Positions 29,547 through 42,400 of a stretch of 64,000 nucleotides of DNA are shown piece after piece. Numbering within the stretch: position 1 is the first letter of the stretch; the number at the start of each line of letters is the position of its first letter. Made by a program: the position numbers and the translations under genes. This DNA comes from Adineta vaga (taxonomy: Eukaryota > Animalia > Rotifera): contig CP075493.1 of the NCBI GenBank assembly GCA_021613535.1, positions 8,866,001 through 8,930,000 on the forward strand, written 5' to 3'. The notes below the pieces were generated by a model. That model searched no databases. It saw only the letters and a program-made list of their open reading frames with translations, and had not been told where the DNA came from.

Positions 29547-32500
29547 TTACCATTTCATTAATTCAGGTATATTACGGTAATAATCGAGACAAGTTGGATT
29601 TGATAATGAGCCAGTTGCATGTATTGTTTGACCTTCGATAATACGACGAATCGGTACTTCCACTTTTTTCATATTAATTGTATACTAAAATATAAAAATA
29701 GGATTTGTTTGTGGATTTTTTTTGCGTAAGATAAAATAACATGCATATAGTTTTTAGTGAGCATTTGGAAGTGAGAACAGTGTGAAATTCGTTGTCTGAG
29801 ACTGTTACCTGACGAGTTGACTTATAGTTATAATGTCAATACAGGAAATAGCTTTTAAATTAAGAGGAAATATCATGTAAATTTTTATGTCTGTCTATTA
29901 ACTAAGTAACCGCCAAAGAAAGTCTTTTGTCATTAGTTTTATTCAAATGATTATTTAAATTTTTTTCTAGAGCTGTAACTTTAATCATCGTATTAATCTT
30001 CATATTCTTTAGGGTAGTGCGAAACTCTTAATTTCTTGATCTAATAATCATTATTATCAAAAGTAACTTCCCACGATGACCTAAGGCATTGCCGAATTCA
30101 TCCCATGAAATTTAAATATAATTCTTAACATTTTGATAAATAATTGAAATGATTATATTTACGGGTATTTCAGGTACTTGTACAATCACTTCAGGCACAT
30201 GTCTTGCTGATAATTGTTGTCGTATTGCTATTTTAATTCGATCAACTAATGTTTTTTCCAAATGAATAACATCTGCTGGTAGCTAAAATACAAAAAAATC
30301 ATGTTCATATTAAAAGTTTTCTTTCCTTGCTTTCGTATATATTAATTCATTAGTTGAGTGCAGCTCACACCCTCAGAAATATCCGTTAAGCTAATTGTCT
30401 TCTCCTTTTTAAAAGTCATTTCATGTCGTTTTTACAACTAACATAAATAATAATTAGTGAAGAAAGAAGAAATGTTCACTGGCAATAAATCTTCTACATC
30501 TATTTTCTTTTTGTTTTAGCTAATAGATAGATTCTTTCTTCTCACGAACTACAATCATTTTTAAGATAAGAAAAAATATCCATTTAAACCTATCCACAAA
30601 CGATGGTAATCATGACGTTTCTTAAGCGGTAAGTTTAGTTTCTTTTTCTTTTATTATTATCTTTATTATAAAAGAATGAAAATTAGACTTTTTCAATGGA
30701 AGTAGTCGATTTTCTTTTTAAAAAAAGATAGTGGAAACTTGTTAAGTCATTTCCTTTTTTTTCATACCATGTAAGATTTAATGAAGTGAAAAATAAGTTT
30801 TTATATTAAAAAGATTACTGTCATTTTAAATGAAGAAATATTATGCTTATATTCTTCAGCAATAGATTTTCTACTTCAACATGTCAGTTGGTATTTTTCC
30901 ATTAGAGAAGTTATTTCTTATCGGAAAGCATGAAAACCTCGTTAACTGTGATGTCTATACGTTTCCTAATCGATAGTATTTAGTCTGATATAGAAGTAAC
31001 CAATTATAGTTGATCTTAACACTCAATTGCTTTCCCTTCTTCTATATCCATTGAAAAACATCTTCCTTTTTCTCATATTTTTTTATCAGCCAAGTAGCGA
31101 TAACAAGCATAGTATTGACTAAAATTTTCTATTCGAAAAACCTTTTTCTATCCATTAGTGAAAACAAAGGTAAAGTATCTATTTCATTCAATGACTAATC
31201 TCCATGAAAAAAGTTTTAGGGTTTTCCTTTCTAATTAAATGAGAATAACTGTAGGCATTTATGAGTTCCTTTGCGTATAGTAATGCCATAAAACAAAACA
31301 GATCAATGAACACATTATAATTACTTAGTTTTGAAGTCGAACTATTGTTGGCATCATGTTGTTTTTCTATTTAACATGAAATCGTGCGGAAGCAATGCAA
31401 TCAAGTTTTGAAAAGGCGTGCTTAGTCATGCTTGTTTTTACTTTGATTTAATAGTCTTTAAAGGTTTTTCTTCTTTTTATAATTGCTTTTTCTCCTATTA
31501 ACTAGTCAGTGTAAAAATTCTATCCAAATACTTTTACTTGATTAGCAGAACTACGAATATCATCTTACACTGCTTAATAAGGTATGTAATTGTTGATCGA
31601 ATAGACGTCCCCATAGATTGAGAATAGTGGTTCTAAGTAAAATTTATGTTTCATCTTGATGCTTGAGAAAATCTTTTAGTATTCTAATGAAGAAGTTTTC
31701 TGGCTCATAGAAATATTGTAGAAAAACTATGAATCATCTAGTTGACATCTGTTCCATTAGAGCACAGATGACTAAATCTTTAAAAGATATTTCCAATAAG
31801 AACATTCATTGTACCCAGAGTCTTTTCTTAGCCATCGACGAAAGTTGGAATAACAGCAGAGTAGAAAACATCGAACAAACAGACTTTGTACTTCATTTTT
31901 CCTATCCTACTCGGATGATTGTAAATTCCATAAAATGATGATGATGATGATGATGATGAAATTTGGCAGAAGAAACAAACAGAATAATCAATCATATAAA
32001 AATCAGTTGCATTTCTTTTTTCCTTTTCATTGATAATTAAGTTTCGTCTATATTCTACTCAGTAACAATCAGTTTAGAAAAAATACTATAAAAAACAATA
32101 TAACATGACTAAAGCCCACGCTTCATTTGTTCTTTCTAATTCACAATACTCATCAAAAGAATACATGTATTCACATACATAAAGAAGATGAGATTCATTT
32201 CCTGCGATGTTTCTACTAGATGTTAGTTTCCTCAAGCTAATTGCGACTAAAGTAGGCGATTGTATTCATCGAAAGATTTTCCTTTTTCTTCTATAAATGC
32301 ATGGAGGAAGTTTAAACTAGGTTATTTTCTTCTTCAGAATGAACAATACGTGCATAATTCTCCTATTATTTATTGCGTTTGTTTCATGTGCTTTATCATC
32401 TTATCTTGATATCCCACCACCACCTGAACGACCATTACGTTTTAAAACTAAAGAACAAATTGAAACTTATCTCAAAGCTGTGAAAGATTATTATGACGCA

Positions 32501-35500
32501 TTTAAAATAAAACTTGTTCGTCGAGAAAATTCTCTTGATACTTATTCTCATATGAATCAATTGTCAGCTGATGATAGTAACGGAATGGATGATGATGATG
32601 ATGATGAACAACAACAAACAATTTATTATCTCAATCAATTACCCGCCAATTCATATTTTCGACGACGTTATAAAGTTAGACGTTTAATGAATATTTAAAT
32701 CAAAAGAGGAAAATTTTTGCATGATTCAAAATATACGAAATAAAATCTCATTTGTTCGTTTCAATTCTATCCAGTTCAAACGAAAGAAAAAACAACAACA
32801 TATATCTTTTATATCTAATTGGATTGAGTTAATTTTACATATTCGAATAAAGAATGAATAATCGTCATGTTTTATCTTTTTTTTGCTTTCTCACTCTCTC
32901 TCTCTCCCTCTCCCTCCCTTTCTATATTCTCTCTTCTTTTTTTATTTTACTTACTTTAAGAAAAAGAACAACACGTTCATTACCAGTTGTTGGATTCCGT
33001 TGAGCGACACATAAACTATCGACAATTTCACCATTGAATTGATCGACAATAGAATAAATTTCAGCGGAACCGAAACGAATGCCATTAGGATTCAGTGTAC
33101 CATCACTAAAGAAATCATAACTAGAGTTCGTTCATTCCATCAAAAATCAAACTAATAACCTTCGACCAAGCATTACAATACCACGAGTTACTGGATTGAT
33201 CAAACAGAAATCGGAATGATTCCATAAACCTAGACAAATGAAAGTAGACGAGAAAGTTAATAAAAAAAAACCCGCATGTACGAAGAAAATTAAACCTGGA
33301 TATTTATCGAAATAAGCTCGATGATATTTTTCACCATTCGAATCATTCCAAAAGGAAACTGGCATGGAAGGAAATGGTTTAACACATACAAGTTCACCAC
33401 TTTCGCCTTCTAATTTCGTTCCTTTATTACAGCAAAAAAACATAACAATATTAAAAATCGAAAGAAAGGGAATATCAATACCATCTTCCGCCCAACATTC
33501 AATTGCCATAGCTAAATGTGGAGATTGTATTTCTCCTTGATGAACACTTAATGTTGGATTCACACCGGCAAAACAAGAACTATTCTCATAACAAAAGGAA
33601 ATTTTTTATTGACGAATAGACAAACATTTGTTCTTACATTATATCCGTTCCACCAGTAATTGAACCTAATAATACATCGCTTTTAATTTCCTTGTAAACA
33701 TAATCAAATATTCGACCATGTAATGGCGAACCCGTTGATAAAATAGTATGTACTGTATTAAGTTTATTATGTGTACGAGGAGATACATTCTGTTCTTCCA
33801 AGGCTGCTAAATAACGTGCACTACAACCGAATATTGTTATTCTATATTGAAAACATCATAGAAATAGTATCGATTTAGTTCATATGAAGAATTCTACCCA
33901 ATTTCATCTGCTAAATCCCAAAGTCGATAACAATCCGGCACAATTGGTGATCCATCATACAGAACAATCGGTGTACCCAAGGCAATCGATGAGATTAACT
34001 AAATAAAACGCCATGTAATTACGTATTTATTTATCAACAAAAAAAAGTCTTCCGTTACCCAATTCCACATCATCCATGAAACCGCTAAATATCGGCAAAT
34101 TCGTTATTGAATAGTTAGATAGGAACAAAATAAATAGGATATTTTTGTTTACCTGTAAAATAAAATAAAATATCTCCATCTTTCATATTGCTTTGTAATC
34201 GATGTTCTTTCAAATGATTCAATAATGTTCCACCATGTCCATGAACAATACATTTCGGTGCACCGGTTGTACCAGATGAATACATGTGAACACATCAAAA
34301 AAGACAAATGATAAAGATTCGAAATATAAGATAAAAGAATACTTATAATAAATAAGGGATGATTGAATGGTACTTGTTCAAATTCTAATGGTATATTTGC
34401 ATCACCAGGCATCGAAAGAAAATCATCAACTGTAATACTAAAATTTAGATTGATGAAAACAAAATGAATGTTAAACCTATTGAAAATAAAACCTGTTCGG
34501 GATTGCACTGAGATCCATTGAATAATCAGGTAGAAATGGGATAACAACAACAAATCGTAATGATGGTAATGCTATAGGAAAAATAATATCAAAATGATTT
34601 ATTTCAATTTACAATGACAAGTAAGAATCCTACCAAGTACACTATCTTTAAGTTTGGTCAATGAATCATGTGTTTTTCGATTGTAAACAACAGCATTGCA
34701 GCCAAAGATAACTTTGGGTTCAATCTGACTGAAGCGTTCCGTTACACCCTACCAATTACGAATAGATCAATTATGAAAATATGAAAACAAAAACTTGTAT
34801 TTACAAGGACACCAAAATCTGCTGATGCAGAACTAAATATGGCACCGAGACTAGCCGTTGCCAGACAAATAATGAATGCTTCAGGACAATTTGGAAGATA
34901 AACTAAGATAATTTAGAATAGAATTTGTATCAATAGATGACCTTCGAATGTTTACCTGCGACACGATCACCAACTGTAACACCAATATGTTGCAATGCAG
35001 CACGATAACGACGAACTTGTTCATTCAATTGTGCAAATGTCAATCTTTTAATCGATGAATCTCCTTCACCTATAAAATTAAAATCACATTTTTCAAATAA
35101 TCTAATCAATTTTGTTTTGATCAGATAGATGAATCAACTTTATATGAGAATCCTTATTACAAATTATAAGCTGATCAATAGAATTCAAGATATTGTATAG
35201 AGAACAGAGACATGTTACCTTATATCTAACGATAGAATCAGTTTTAAAAAGCTGAAAGAATTTCTACTTTGATCTTACGATAAACAGAACTAACGTTAAC
35301 TTACTGCACGAATAAATAGCAACTCGATCATCTTTGAAACGAAGAAGATTTTCAGCATAATTCAAACGTGCACCCACAAACCAACGAGGAATTTCATTCA
35401 TTTTCTTATCTTCTTCTAAGACCTAGATAGATTATATATATAGAGATTAGTTTTCAATATACATTCAGAAATAATTTAATATAAATAGAACATACTTGTT

Positions 35501-35756
35501 CAAATGGTACAGAATGAATAATATCACTATAAATCCAAAATGTTTCCCAGAATTTTGAGATATTTTTTATTGACCATTCGTATAAATCCCAATAGGACTC
35601 TAAATTGATGAAACGCTAGCTAATCATATTCTGAGATGAACAGAAGAAAAAACGTTTTGTACCTAGTTTTACTTGATATTTATTCATAATAATCTCCCTA
35701 AACTCATCAATATTCGTTGGAATACCCGAAGGCGGCGACCAAAGTTTATGCGACAT
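29547..35756 (-). CDS. AACS: Acetoacetyl-CoA synthetase (multi-exon)
   Basis: MSHKLWSPP start, [96 protein letters not shown] and [11 protein letters not shown]. Stop at 29547-29549. Confidence 0.93.
31935..31958. repeat. (ATG)8 microsatellite
   Basis: atgatgatgatgatgatgatgatg read directly from the sequence. Confidence 0.9.
32339..32698 (+). CDS. Neuropeptide Y/F-like precursor (divergent), nested antisense in AACS intron 30283-32954
   Basis: Signal peptide [20 protein letters not shown], then PP-fold-like [27 protein letters not shown], dibasic RR and an acidic C-peptide. Acceptor TTCAG lies immediately before the ATG. Confidence 0.8.
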   Translation: MNNTCIILLLFIAFVSCALSSYLDIPPPPERPLRFKTKEQIETYLKAVKDYYDAFKIKLVRRENSLDTYSHMNQLSADDSNGMDDDDDDEQQQTIYYLNQLPANSYFRRRYKVRRLMNI

Positions 35757-35917
35757 CTAAATCAAGAAAACAGTAAGCATTAGCTTGTTAACATGTTTTA
35801 CTCTCTGAATTTTTATGAAAAAACATAAGGCAAGACACATAAACGTATAAATATAGACAAAAAGCACAAGTACATTAATAATAGCATATAGAAAGAGTAC
35901 AAGTTGAGTCAAGTATG

Positions 35918-36604
35918 TTATTTGTTCTTCTTTTCTTTTTTATTATCACGCGTTGCTTCTTGGTTATCTTCATTATCGTCACTTTGTGATTCATGATCAT
36001 CCGATTCTTGTTCGACCTCTGCTTCTTCTTCTTCTTCTTCGACTTTGACTGGTTTTTTGTGTGCACTCAAACGCTTTTCTCGTTGAGTTACTTGTCGATA
36101 GATAATCAAACGTGTTAATAATAACAGACTAAAGACAAGACCAGGTGCAATACGTTCAAATTTATCATTTAATGCATAATGAGAATAAACAGCACCTAAC
36201 ATAACTGCTAAGAGAACGACGTTTGCCACTTGTTTAAGCCGACCTATTAAAGAAAAAATCATAATAAACCAATAAAAGAATGTCTCAGATTTCATAGAAG
36301 AATTACCTGGTACAAAAGCTAGAATAGCTCCACCAATAAATTCAACGAAACCAACTGCTAAACGATAATTTCTTGCGAATGGACGCCAATATGTAAATTC
36401 ATACAATGGAAATACTTTATTGAGTCGACCAAATTCTCTTCTCTAAACAAAGAAAAAGAAGAAGATAATCGAATTGATGTTTACTATATTTACCATATCT
36501 TCATGTACATCAGGAAAAAATTTTGGTGTAACTTTAAAATGTCCCACGAACATGAAAAACATTCCAAGAGTTAATGTTAATACAGTTAAAGCTATGGAAC
36601 CCAT
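35918..36604 (-). CDS. TMEM35A: TMEM35/NACHO (novel acetylcholine receptor chaperone, DoxX-like), 3 exons
   Basis: MGSIALTVLTLTLGMFFMFVGHFKVTP...REFGRLNKVFPL...YRLAVGFVE...GAVYSHYALND...GLVFSLLL. Acidic tail ending in KKNK (ER-retrieval-like). Confidence 0.85.
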
Positions 36605-36675
36605 GATCTAGAAAAAAAGCAAAAGACAAAGTTCAAAAATTTTATTATTCCTGAAAAGAAAAAACAATTGAAATG
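36605..36675 (-). promoter_or_regulatory. Compact intergenic element: AATAAA, U-rich tract and unpaired 3' splice acceptor (candidate trans-splice site)
   Basis: Minus strand reads TAA...GAATAATAAAATTTTTGAACTTTGTCTTTTGCTTTTTTTCTAG ATC ATG. AATAAA at 36641-36646, AG at 36608-36609. Confidence 0.6.
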
Positions 36676-39055
36676 TTAAATATCAACAAAATTCGATGAA
36701 ATTGCTGTACAAATTTCAGTATCAAAATCATAATCAACTGTAGCGGATGAAGCATCTGACGTGGTACGTTCACGATTAATTAATGGCAATTCAATACATG
36801 GATTTATATCTGATTTATTATTGATCAGTAATAGATTAGGTATATCTTCGGATTTAACCCGTTCGGAAGAGAGTATCTGACTTGATGGAAGTTGATTGTC
36901 TTCAAGTTTAGGTTGAATTTGTGGATCACATTCGAATTTGAGTTTTTTATCTTGTATTTTTCGATTTTCTAATGATATGGCTAAGATGTAGAGAAAAAAT
37001 TTCAAAAACTGTCTGAATTGATTAATATACAAAACTTACATCTTATCGTTTGTTTACAATCATTTGTAGTGATTTTTCTACTAGAATCTTTTAATGAGTT
37101 CACTCGTTGTAAAAGTAATTTTTCTCCTTCATCATCGATATCTAAATCTAAATCGTCCTGTTCATCTTGTCTTTGACTTTGTTCTTTCATAAATTTCTTC
37201 TTTCGTTTTCTATCAGCTTTTGTTTGAAATGATTCATAACGATGTTTGATTTGTTGTTGATGATTAATAGGTTTTCGTTGAATTTTTTCATTCAATTTCA
37301 TTGTTGTTACCATTGTTGATTTCTTTGAATCTTGAATATAATGATCAACAATTTGAAAAAGACGTTTCGGAGTTAATTGAGATGTAAATGGAGCTGCTAT
37401 AGGTGTGACACGTTTTGGTTTCAATGTTTTTAAAACATCAGCTATTTCCGAAAAGGATGAATGAAGAGAATAACATAAACGGTAACTTGAATATTTATCA
37501 GTATAAGAAACATCAACACCTTCACCGCCATAATCTTGAAAACCAATAAAATAACGTTTATTAGATGTTGAAACACTTTGTTCAAAATTCGAATGATATT
37601 TATGATATTCAACTAATAATTCACCTGATTAACAACAATAAAAAGAAACAATATTTATCGAAGAAGATTTATTTCAATCATACCAGCAGCAATCTGATCT
37701 GTAAACCACATAATTGATAAAAGTACACGTATTGGTTTATCACAATTACGAAAAAATGAACATGGTTGAGCAAAATTGGATGCTGATGTACGACAAGCAT
37801 GTAAACGTGTTGTATTTGGATCAGTAGTTAAACATTCTTGAATAATAGGTATGCAGGAATAAAAATCATATTGACTTTGTTCAACATGTATACGCATGCC
37901 GAGACCATCGTATAAAGCACGATAGATTTGTTCATAGCCAACACGAGCACTAGAAAATGAAATAAAATATCATTCATGGCAGATTTTTATTATTTGCTCG
38001 ATGAGCTAGATCACACTGTTCAAATATATTTATGATAGTACTAATCAATCGCAACCATTTTCCGATGTTACAAACTAGATGAAATCGAGCTTATCAAACT
38101 GAAGCGTCTGATAATAGAATTACCATTCTAAAACTTGTATATGACAGGGGAAGGTCAACCTCACTCATACTCTATTTAACGGAAAGTACCATAAAATCAA
38201 TAGATATTATGTCTTTAAAAATAAAATGAATAAAAATGAATCATACTGTTCATATCAATATCTTAACAACACAGCGTATGAAATACTGTACCTTGTTTTG
38301 AAGTAAATATTAGCTGTATTTGATTTATCAGCAACTAAACTTTTAATCCATAGAATGAGCGCTTCACAACTAACTTCACGTGTTGGTATATGTAAAATAT
38401 CTGGTCGAAAAAAAGTCATATCAATATACAGATTCTCAATTGGTTTAAATATATGTGTTTCATCTTTGCCATCATCAGTTCGTCGTCGATGTAAATGTGT
38501 TATACGTTTTGTTTGTCCACGATAAAGTCGAAAATCGCCAGTAAATAATACATTTCCATGTTCACCTTCGATCCAAACCATCATGGAACCAGGACAATGT
38601 CCTGAACCAAAGCACGTTACCAAAATCGGTTCACCAACATTAGGTGCATGTGAAGATAATGTACTTTTCATACTATCACTATCTAAAATATGAATAATCT
38701 CTTAATCATTCGATGATTGTCCATATTTACCTGCGCCTTCTTTCTTCTTTGCTTGTATAGGATCATTGGATTGAATTGTTAATGCGAATGGTTGATCGAG
38801 TGGAACTGTTTTAAAATACGGAATTAAATGTCGATATGGTGCCATTGTACTTAGTAACTGTTTAGAAATGTCTGACATATAGATTGGTGCATTAATTTTG
38901 GCAACATATTTACCAAATTCTGGTCGTTCAAGACCAACAAGATGATCCATATGAATATGTGTAATAAAAAACATTGTACTCGTATAATTATGTGTTTCAA
39001 ATGAATCGATGGATATAAGAGGATACTCCTCCAATATACCATGATACGTACACAT
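36676..39055 (-). CDS. DCLRE1C: Artemis / DNA cross-link repair 1C (metallo-beta-lactamase/beta-CASP nuclease)
   Basis: N-terminus MCTYHGILEEYPLISIDSF, THIHMDHLVGL, GHCPGSMM, LFTGDFR, LYIDMTF, TRLHACR, SIMWF and YSLHSSFSEI. The exact terminal exon is uncertain. Confidence 0.88.
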
Positions 39056-39099
39056 ACTGGAAAATCTATAAAAAAAAGAATTATTTCTATTTGCTCTGG

Positions 39100-39250
39100 G
39101 TACATAATAAAATCATTGGAGATTGTAGTGATAACTCTGTGAGAGCCACGTAGAAAGGGTGTGTCAGAGAGAGATAGAGTAGTCATTCTTGTATGAAACA
39201 AAGAACTGATTGTGTGATTTGAAAATTGAATTGACCAATCAATCAGTCAT
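39100..39250. promoter_or_regulatory. CCAAT-box-containing putative promoter upstream of Artemis
   Basis: GACCAATCA near 39233-39241 and ATTGG near 39115, just downstream (on the minus strand) of the TMEM8 poly(A)-signal cluster. Confidence 0.3.
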
Positions 39251-39474
39251 TTTTGTAACTATAAGTTTGTGATTATGTTTTATTTATTATTATTATTCAT
39301 TTATTATTATTATTATTCACAAAAAAAGAAACCTTAGTTTTGTTAGAGAAAAAATGTTTCACAAAGTAGCGACATCTGAAGGCATGAAAATATAGGATAG
39401 ATGTGTTGAAAAGAGTTTTGCACCAAAAATATTGATAATAAAAGAACACATAATTAGTATCTTATCAGATCACA

Positions 39475-42400
39475 TTAAGCAATAGATATAGTCGTATCAA
39501 ATTGATTGTTTGACTCGGTAGTTGGTAATGCTGCACCATCGTTCACCACACCAACTGATCGATTAGATGTTGTATTTGAATTTAATTCAATAGATGATTT
39601 TCGTCCTATATTTTGTCCTAAAGCAACAACAAACGTATAATTCTTTCATTATCCTTCAAGTACATGAAGATACTCCTTCGAATATAATCAATACTCCTGT
39701 AGATATTTTTCATTTACTTTTCTTCTGTGGTAAGAAAAATAGAATTGAAATTGCCATAAACATATGCCATAAACTATGTATATACCAATAAGTGTCATCT
39801 GTTTCAAAGAATGCAAATAAAACAATTCCTGTAATTGAAAATGCCAATCCCAATAAAATGCATAGTAGACGTTTTCTCGTCAATTGTACACGACGTTTTT
39901 TAATCGAAATAACAATCTAAAAAAAATTTTGATTTTCTTTTCTTATCTTATTCACATCATTCGTAACATACCCATGTCACAAGAGTAAAACCAAATGTAA
40001 TCGCTATTAAAGCAATAAATTGTAAATTGTCAAAACGATCACGAGAATTAATCACAACACATGTTAAAACACCTAACATAAATAAAAAGACTTTTATTGA
40101 TCGTGGAATAATTGACATTGTAATTAATGTAATCACAAATGATGCATATGAACCAATAAAATCTGATAATTGTAACCCATCATATTTAAAAATACAAAAT
40201 CGTCGTATTTCTTGATCACATGCATGATAAAACTATACAAAATCATTGAGTTTTTTAAAGAAAATTTCTCCGTATTCAAAGGAAAAAACTTACAGTCGAA
40301 AAAAACATATTGAAAAAATAGACCAATGCTTCAATATATAAACGATTATAAAGTGCAAAAATCACTGCAGGAATAAACATTAAATTACTCAATGTTAAAA
40401 ATAATACACTTGGTAAATATCGTGATACATCTGAATATGTACTATCCGTACATCCATAACCACGATAACCTAAAAGAAAATTGAATACATTCAGATATTA
40501 AATAAAGAATTAAAGAAATTTTTCGTTTAAAATTTTTACTCACCAGCAACACATGTACAAGTAGAAAATATATTCTGTTGTGATGTCATTATTCGACAAA
40601 TTCCATAAATTCCACATTTTTGTCGAGTACACTGTGACGATAAGATTTGAAAGTTAATTACCATGGTTGTATTATCACATTCAGTTGTCGAACTAAATGT
40701 AAAGAATGTATTTAGATAAACAATTCGTATTTATCTTACTCATTACAACTATATTCTAATGTTAAATACCAAAGAGCCATTTCAGGATAAGGTAATGATC
40801 TGACTGTTAAAGAATTTGGTTTCAGTATGAGTTTATAATCCATTTCACAAGAATGATATCGTCGTGGTTGATTTTTGGATAAACAAACCAGAATGTTAAC
40901 ACTAGCATTCAATGAATTGAGCGACTAAAATAAGAAAAAGATTTATACAAATAATAAATGTTTCAAATTTACTTTTAGTTCTGTCTCAAAATCGAAATGA
41001 ATTGTTCCACCGATATTTTTTTCATCAACAATGAATTCATATGAATAGATAGAAACATTATTTCGATTGAATACTATTGAATGAGTACTACTATTTGTAT
41101 GTAAGGGTACATAGACGAAATCATAGTAATAATTATACATAATTCGCCGTGTTGGATAGGATTGAATACAATTAATTTCATCTGAACATAATGAACATTC
41201 TAGAAGAAGTGATTTTGAAATCAATAAATTACCTATTGAACGAATAAGCATATCACCGAAGAGAGGAGTATTTAAACATGTCGAATTATCTACTGTTATT
41301 CGAAAATAAATCCAAAGAAATGTAGCTAATTGATCGATTTCTATTGAACATAAACCATTCTTACAAACTACAAGAAAATACATTATTTCATAAAAAATAA
41401 AATTCTTTCACAAATACAAACTTGTTCGATAATCATATTGAAATGAATTCGGTAATCCATTGATACGAGCGAGAATGATAATATCACAGTTAGACGACCA
41501 ATTCGATAAAACTAATAATCGAGAATTACTTGTTGATGTATAATATCTAAATAAAAAGAATATTTATTACATATGAATGTCAATAAAAAATGGCGAGAGC
41601 TTGTGTATGATTGCTAATCTTAACGATCTTAGTCTGGCAATGTGTAATGAAATCAGGAGGTTATTCATGCAAGAAAAGAGCACAAGATGTGAAATATTTA
41701 CGATGTATAGACAAATGTTGTATTATTAGATAAAATAATTGACAACGGACGATCGATAGTTAGCGTTAGTAAAACTGGTATTGCTTGATAGTCAAGCCAG
41801 GTTGTTAGATAAATGTTACAGTTACTGGTAGATATCTGAATATTGTATAGTCCAAGAGAAAAAGAAATAGTCATCTATACTTGATTGACATACCTTAGAT
41901 TTCGTATTGATAGATGGACGTTCAACGAATATCTAAAAAGAATCATTTTGTAGAATAGAAATGTTTGTATTAAGTTTCGTTTTTACCATAGCAAACCATG
42001 TTCCACTCAATGGATTATCTAATTGAACTGTTCCATTCGAAATTGTTCGATTGAATGTTGTTAACATCAAATCATGACGTGAAGATATATATGTTTCAGG
42101 AAAAGATTCATTACGTGGAGCAATCAATGGATAAGCACCATACTGAAGATTACTGTTTGTAAAGAAATCAAGATTATTTTTATAGAAAGAAATTCATTCT
42201 CTCATACAAATGAATTGTGGGAAAATAATTGTTACATTGCCCATCAGTATTGAGTGTGATTGACCAATTAGCTAAAGTTGTCGGCGCATAGATATTAAAT
42301 TTAAGAAATTTTACATCTGAATAATCAGTGTATTCAAAAATACGAATTTGAGAATAATATTGTCCAACATCATATCCTTAATAAACCAAGAAAAATTGTT

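Follow-up and report, generated by a model that had tools for sequence, protein, structure and literature searches.

The 64,000-nucleotide stretch of Adineta vaga contig CP075493.1 analysed here (hereafter the window) carries, at positions 32339-32698 of its plus strand, a gene which on sequence evidence is a real and selectively maintained paralogue of neuropeptide F (NPF), found so far in bdelloid rotifers only. The predicted peptide keeps the pancreatic-polypeptide fold (PP-fold) and the length of a canonical NPF, whereas the activating R-x-R-F-amide at its C-terminus has been exchanged for K-I-K-L-V. On balance we consider it probable that the gene encodes a secreted signal whose swapped tail is read by a partner that has diverged together with it.

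The gene reads as an uninterrupted open reading frame of 119 codons, the parts of which are as follows (window coordinates):

32339..32398, plus strand: signal peptide, residues 1-20, with cleavage after A-L-S by the -3/-1 rule
32399..32518, plus strand: predicted mature PP-fold peptide of 40 residues, S21-V60, supported by the match to PF00159, conservation and substitution rates
32504..32518, plus strand: replacement tail K56-I-K-L-V60, which in the alignments occupies the position of GRPRF in canonical NPF
32519..32524, plus strand: dibasic R61-R62, presumed convertase cleavage site, invariant in 34/34 sequences
32525..32698, plus strand: acidic, fast-evolving C-terminal spacer E63-I119 and stop codon, diverging but in frame

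Residues 1-20 have a hydrophobic core as judged by eye, AlphaFold2 predicts a helix at residues 2-22, and in the alignment the sequence falls opposite the signal peptides that canonical NPF precursors carry. The order of signal peptide, peptide, basic site and C-terminal piece likewise matches the canonical NPF precursors column by column, i.e. the layout of NPY/NPF precursors. The C-terminal spacer of 57 residues includes a poly-Asp run encoded by a (GAT)n repeat at 32591-32611, the length of which varies among orthologues. Towards the end of the spacer a basic motif, RRRY[KR][IV][KN]RLMN (32660-32695), is kept in one ohnologue lineage (lineage A, comprising Adineta and Rotaria) and is absent from the other ohnologue lineage and from Didymodactylos.

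The family assignment was examined by profile searches. With hmmscan, residues 26-52 matched positions 1-27 of the 36 positions in PF00159 (Hormone_3) with an E-value of 3e-5 (24.4 bits), and a six-frame search of the genome with the same profile gave 26.6 bits for the gene; canonical rotifer NPFs score 45-51 bits, and 32/34 of the aligned homologues match the profile. As read from the reported coordinates, in canonical NPFs of rotifers and insects the Pfam model ends on the amidated F/Y and, after it, the Gly donor; when the ungapped match of the window protein is extended to that end, V60 takes the place of the former and R61 that of the latter. The spacing from the first Pro to V60 is identical to that in canonical rotifer NPFs. 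An exhaustive search of 1.84 billion representative proteins with a hidden Markov model of the family produced ten matches at E < 1e-10, all of the KLV-RR type, followed at E 1e-7 to 1e-4 by canonical NPFs, among them Seison nebaliae P0104, bdelloid GRPRF-G proteins and, at E 6.9e-5, a protein from the moth Cydia pomonella (P0097) named 'Neuropeptide F 2 / pro-neuropeptide Y-like'. From PPPP to YY the alignments with canonical NPFs contain no gaps, and P29, P32, F35 and Y44 are shared by every NPF type in the alignments, with Y51 almost as constant.

In the peptide-only AlphaFold2 model (pLDDT, the predicted local distance difference test score, 78) the Pro-rich arm is extended and residues 38-59 form a helix; the full-length model has a pLDDT of 60 and a disordered spacer. 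Foldseek was run with the 44 residues of the peptide-only model, against 350,542 chains. The two best rows, at E-values that are not significant (see below), were NPY from its complex with the Y1 receptor (7x9a) and 7rt9, a crystal structure of PYY/NPY (template-modelling score 0.63/0.75, root-mean-square deviation 1.5 Å). The designed miniproteins 1v1d and 5wha, which we take to be built on the scaffold of avian pancreatic polypeptide, were among the further rows. Taken together, profile, alignments and model point to the core of the PP-fold, in which a Pro-rich arm lies against an amphipathic helix that bears conserved Tyr residues, and by these sequence-based measures the window gene is a member of the NPY/NPF family that keeps both fold and length.

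With regard to the tail, all members of the window gene's family end in K-[IV]-K-L-V instead of the R-x-R-[FY] pharmacophore, and none of the 34 aligned members has a Gly before the cleavage site. Since there is no Gly, amidation is impossible. The groups with which NPY/NPF dock into their receptors, namely the two Arg, the C-terminal aromatic side chain and the amide, are thus all missing from the tail. The codons at the junction are GTT CGT CGA (V-R-R) in the window gene and TTT GGT CGT (F-G-R) in the canonical NPF that we call type b below, so that one base change suffices to turn Phe (TTT) into Val (GTT), and one more to turn Gly (GGT) into Arg (CGT). Judged from these codons, the Gly-to-Arg replacement removes the amide donor and at the same time makes the monobasic G-R site dibasic.

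A hidden amidated exon was also considered. A scan for [FY]G[KR] in the three frames of the plus strand from 30000 to 40000 gave three matches:

31962, plus strand: KFGRR, upstream of the ATG, in an ATG repeat
34890, plus strand: GQFGR followed by a stop (GQFGR*), within the host gene body
36862, plus strand: NPFGRE, within the host gene body

None of these is plausible as an exon, and the hidden exon was rejected on that ground. The (ATG)n run upstream of the gene occupies 31935-31958, and its repeat length varies among orthologues.

These results agree with what the earlier note had reported from the letters of the window, which is hereby confirmed as an observation: the frame reads exactly as described there, with a signal peptide followed by a peptide ending in KIKLV and no Gly anywhere in the tail, and the distance from the Tyr pair to the end is preserved. 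The setting alone calls for correction, in that the note compared the peptide with molluscan and flatworm NPFs whereas the gene belongs to a bdelloid rotifer. Of the outcomes that the note regarded as fatal to its proposal, a lack of similarity to the PP-fold family is contradicted by the PF00159 match and by the named NPFs reached in the profile search, and a splice onto an RxRF-G exon found no candidate in the scan; the frame is moreover open and coding past Arg-Arg in every orthologue.

The conservation of the peptide lies well outside what chance would give. A word-based search yielded 88 homologues, and those with a species name are all from bdelloids (Adineta ricciae, A. steineri, A. vaga, several Rotaria and Didymodactylos carnosus). 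When 34 sequences from this set, covering three bdelloid genera, were aligned, the residues R34, F35, K36, T37, Q40, I41, Y44, L45, K49, D50, Y51, Y52, A54 and F55 proved invariant, and so did K58, L59 and V60 of the tail and R61 and R62 of the basic site. The replacement tail is thus conserved as strongly as the remainder of the peptide, and conservation ends exactly at Arg-Arg, beyond which the frame is kept but the sequence diverges.

The rates of nonsynonymous (dN) and synonymous (dS) substitution were estimated by the method of Nei and Gojobori from seven coding sequences, with the window copy as reference and Arg-Arg counted with the peptide. Against the ohnologue in the same genome, dN/dS was 0.032/0.43 for the peptide and 0.56/1.00 for the spacer; the corresponding values were 0.049/0.47 and 0.39/0.83 against Rotaria, and 0.127/1.60 and 0.92/1.62 against Didymodactylos. 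For two metagenome copies the peptide dN was zero at a dS of 0.37 and 0.58. Overall, the ratio is about 0-0.1 in the peptide compared to 0.5-0.7 in the spacer, which has many indels and shows no relationship when the two ohnologue lineages and Didymodactylos are compared. Among nine orthologues the codons of the tail and basic site turn over synonymously (Ile ATA/ATC/ATT, Lys AAA/AAG, Leu CTT/TTA/TTG, Val GTT/GTA and Arg CGA/AGA). Synonymous change under fixed residues indicates that the tail is translated and constrained as protein; with a tail so constrained, decay is ruled out and a splice out of the reading frame before codon 60 is very unlikely.

To place the gene among its relatives, the A. 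vaga genome (100.8 Mb in 6 contigs, numbered with the prefix C below) was searched with PF00159, the family alignment and P0103, a protein from A. ricciae. Five NPF-like gene families were found, mostly as ohnologous pairs:

Type a, C1:9.63M / C4:2.46M: ends in ...YYAIIARPR, intron, F-GKR; classical NPY-family intron
Type b, C1:5.74M / C4:7.41M: ends in ...HEYYAIIGRPRF-GR; other introns, EF-hand-like C-terminal piece
Type c, C2:10.09M / C5:8.99M: ends in ...GRWR[SV]-RR; no Gly
Type d, C1:8.90M (the window gene) / C4:3.47M: ends in KIKLV-RR; no Gly, coding sequence without intron
Type e, C2:9.43M: ends in ...KHLRYW-RR; no Gly; a weak relative on C5 ends in ...LKHW-GR

As canonical amidated NPFs are encoded in the same genome, the window gene is a paralogue. 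An exon-by-exon comparison of the spliced types a, b, c and e showed that all of them have introns within the peptide-coding part. The coding sequence of the window gene is intronless, as it is in Rotaria, Didymodactylos and A. steineri (coding length equal to three times the protein length), and the intron that type a carries at the penultimate Arg (ARPR|F) is absent. Type b is the closest canonical counterpart: it shares with the window gene a signal peptide followed directly by S-[YF]-x-D-[IV]-PPPP.RP.RF, a length of 40 residues and a basic site after the peptide, but it has GRPRF with a Gly donor, two introns in the peptide-coding part and the EF-hand-like C-terminal piece, where the window gene has KIKLV-RR without Gly, an intronless coding sequence and an acidic spacer. 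Types c and e, from the same genome and the same family, resemble the window gene in having lost the Gly and in having Arg-Arg immediately behind the peptide. In the C5 copy of type c the resemblance extends to the final V-RR; type c differs from it by retaining G-R-W-R and the gene structure of type b.

As judged from these sequences, loss of the Gly is recurrent among the bdelloid NPF-like families. In a FastTree phylogeny of 45 columns, from which type a was left out and the deep nodes of which are weak, type c nests within type b (support 0.91), whereas type d stands apart, weakly joined with type e (support 0.59). The losses in types c, d and e look independent in this poorly resolved tree. 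A single loss shared by types c and d, hinted at by the V-RR ending of the C5 copy, received no support from the tree. We infer that the window gene is an old duplicate, which would have arisen before the bdelloids radiated and before their genome was duplicated.

Some further details of these paralogues were recorded. The type b loci lie at C1:5743919-5744200 and C4:7412400-7412664. Type c, which ends in GRWRS-RR or GRWRV-RR and has the gene structure of type b, is located at C2:10092431-10092748 (minus strand) and C5:8986910-8987099 (minus strand), and the word search produced two predicted type c proteins, P0109 (A. vaga) and P0110 (A. ricciae). Type e, with three or more exons at C2:9431927-9432331 (plus strand), has Trp in place of Gly and is represented in A. 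ricciae by P0103; its weak relative at C5:8542594-8542677, possibly the C5 copy, retains the Gly in LKHW-GR. An EF-hand-like loop, D-x-N-x-D-x-x-I-x-x-x-E-F, is present in the C-terminal flank of canonical NPF precursors from bdelloids, Seison and related metagenome sequences (P0092, P0104 and P0093), with Pfam EF-hand scores of 23-24 bits, just under the cut-off of 25. In a metagenome protein, P0091, which resembles an NPF precursor, Thr stands in place of the Gly (RPRF-T-R), and a second PP-fold-like repeat follows downstream in the same protein.

The earlier note had further read the gene as an NPF paralogue that lacks the intron of the RPRF codons and has escaped simple decay. The paralogous GRPRF-GR and ARPR|intron|F-GKR genes, the intronless coding sequence and the low rates in the peptide all bear this out, and the orthologue alignment and rate comparison it had proposed gave an invariant KLV-RR and a purifying-type ratio as opposed to neutral evolution. 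Its interpretation of a maintained, non-amidated NPF paralogue is accordingly supported.

With regard to function, we propose that the signal peptide is removed and that a prohormone convertase would then cut at Arg-Arg, whereafter a carboxypeptidase would trim both Arg to leave a 40-mer with a free-acid Val. The tail of this peptide would be recognised by a co-diverged partner, most probably a duplicated G protein-coupled receptor of the NPF/NPY type. A dedicated co-diverged receptor is favoured because the docking residues have been replaced and yet the new tail is invariant; a passive decoy appears less likely.

It should be underlined that several points weigh against this reading. The Hormone_3 search proposed in the earlier note did return the expected match, but the score of the window protein stays under the curated Pfam threshold of 28.7 bits because the last nine profile positions are unmatched. 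The Foldseek E-values of 6-9 are not significant, as expected for a model of only 44 residues. No solved structure was matched when the PDB was searched with the sequence profile of the family at E-values up to 10, the similarity of the window family to vertebrate NPY being too weak for the profile to find the NPY-family entries. Four orthologues on short contigs, checked for the character of cDNA, all looked genomic or metagenomic, with flanks or neighbouring genes. Finally, the cleavage at Arg-Arg, the trimming and the dedicated receptor are all predicted steps, and a tail without the pharmacophore could equally serve antagonism or a role outside receptor signalling.

Antagonism is the alternative that survives best, though we give it a rather small chance. 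Here the peptide would be a competitive antagonist or decoy: its PP-fold body would still bind the canonical NPF receptor from the extracellular side, and as the altered tail cannot activate that receptor, NPF signalling would be damped. The body PPPP.RP.RF.T.EQ...YL.....YY aligns with canonical NPF without gaps and at equal length and charge, the activating R-x-R-F-amide is wholly lost, and the free acid of vertebrate NPY is inactive. A pure decoy, on the other hand, has no obvious need of an invariant K-L-V, which is fixed in three genera with synonymous turnover, and NPY-type ligands derive most of their binding energy from the C-terminal residues, precisely those replaced here.

An alternative that we find improbable is that the peptide acts outside receptors, as a secreted amphipathic helix for host defence or protein binding. 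The predicted helix at residues 38-59 is indeed amphipathic, and the NPY gene family has produced such a case before: bovine seminalplasmin derives from a gene of the PYY lineage turned into a non-amidated antimicrobial and calmodulin-binding protein. Like the rotifer peptide it is an NPY-family member that has lost the amidated receptor-binding end, and it has taken another role. Seminalplasmin is however recent, lineage-restricted and strongly cationic, whereas the rotifer peptide is ancient in bdelloids, almost invariant and no more cationic than NPF. The peptide S21-V60 has 40 residues, a net charge of +2 and a hydrophobic moment of 0.30, compared to 40, +2 and 0.33 for type b; a gain of charge or amphipathicity of the antimicrobial type was looked for relative to type b and not seen. 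These unchanged properties indicate an NPF with a swapped tail and not a re-purposed cationic helix. Near-total conservation of residues is also typical of receptor ligands and unusual for host-defence peptides.

Slightly less probable again is that Arg-Arg is left uncleaved and that the whole secreted protein of 99 residues, or a larger fragment, is the functional form. The cut is itself a prediction, and lineage A has a second conserved basic motif at the C-terminus, namely the RRRY[KR][IV][KN]RLMN described above. The halt of conservation at Arg-Arg, together with the elevated dN/dS and many indels of the spacer, is nevertheless the classical signature of a propeptide spacer. That the mRNA leaves the frame after the Tyr pair onto a hidden R-x-R-F-Gly exon, or that the gene is a decaying pseudogene, is very improbable: type a does carry the canonical family intron in this region, but the frame of the window gene stays open for 57 further codons at 30% G+C (a chance of ~0.01 per sequence by our own arithmetic), as it does in all 88 homologues, and the exon scan, the purely synonymous change of the tail codons and the low dN/dS of the peptide all speak against it.

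The gene lies within an intron of another gene, and the following elements were recognised around it:

30262..32954, minus strand: host-gene intron of ~2.7 kb (low-end bound approximate), which holds the peptide gene on the opposite strand
32292..32298, plus strand: TATA-like box TATAAAT, ~45 nt upstream of the ATG, with a similar A/T box in the corresponding position of Adineta orthologues; putative function
32324..32337, plus strand: pyrimidine tract and AG, 3' splice acceptor, with the AG at 32336-32337, one base before the ATG
32739..32744, plus strand: AATAAA, first after the stop, from a pattern search; presumed poly(A) signal
32846-32851, plus strand: AATAAA, second after the stop, from a pattern search

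The host (29547-36500, minus strand) is an acyl-CoA synthetase with ACAS_N and AMP-binding domains, similar to acetoacetyl-CoA synthetase. Its minus-strand exon ends in ...VVLFLK|GTAAGT at 32955, and the exons for the C-terminus occupy 30112-30261 and 29547-29672. The antisense nesting is common to Rotaria (L014) and A. steineri (L018), where the same exons flank the gene. At the Didymodactylos locus the downstream host exons alone were found, and the C4 ohnologue has no acyl-CoA synthetase as neighbour. The acceptor, a pyrimidine tract with its AG, and the ATGA.C that comes after it show no variation in 9/9 aligned sequences, which were taken from Adineta, Rotaria and Didymodactylos, from the ohnologue and from metagenome contigs. 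Spliced-leader trans-splicing is known in bdelloids, and an AG so close to the ATG suggests either such trans-splicing or an intron in the 5' untranslated region. A retroposed origin of the gene is possible: the intronless coding sequence and the nesting in another gene's intron are features of retrogenes, but splicing at the 5' end is implied by the conserved acceptor just ahead of the ATG, and the weak tree does not resolve the parent.

Compared to vertebrate NPY, PYY and pancreatic polypeptide, the window peptide shares the Pro facing the Tyr of the helix and the same number of residues between its first Pro and its C-terminus, whereas the R-x-R-Y-amide and the intron in the Arg35 codon are missing. 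In our literature search the NP-HMMer preprint (10.1101/2024.07.20.604414) was the only survey of a rotifer neuropeptidome found, and nothing was found on bdelloid NPF variants. The preprint states that NPF was there first identified in rotifers. The five NPFs that it gives for A. ricciae belong without exception to types a and b, and its type b sequences are NPF_1-3 of Adineta ricciae, NPF_3 of Rotaria socialis and the NPF of Didymodactylos. The motifs DYYDAF, KLVRR, GRWR and LRYWRR are absent from its 13 supplementary files.

From flatworms to humans, the C-terminal R-x-R-[FY]-amide is regarded as the defining and indispensable part of NPY/NPF ligands. The window peptide has discarded it and has nevertheless retained its fold, its length and near-total invariance of sequence over the whole bdelloid radiation. 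It thereby offers a natural experiment on the role of the PP-fold body alone and on how the contact surface between peptide and receptor is re-specified after duplication. It also means that surveys keyed to amidation motifs miss conserved members of neuropeptide families. More tentatively, bdelloids may possess a second, amide-independent branch of NPY/NPF signalling, in which the free-acid KIKLV peptide is a dedicated agonist of a co-diverged receptor; we regard this specific form as possible but doubtful. If true, it would be the first natural PP-fold ligand-receptor pair to work without R-x-R-[FY]-amide, and the separate losses of Gly in types c and e would then suggest that, following the duplication of the bdelloid genome, this hormone family was remodelled throughout the lineage.

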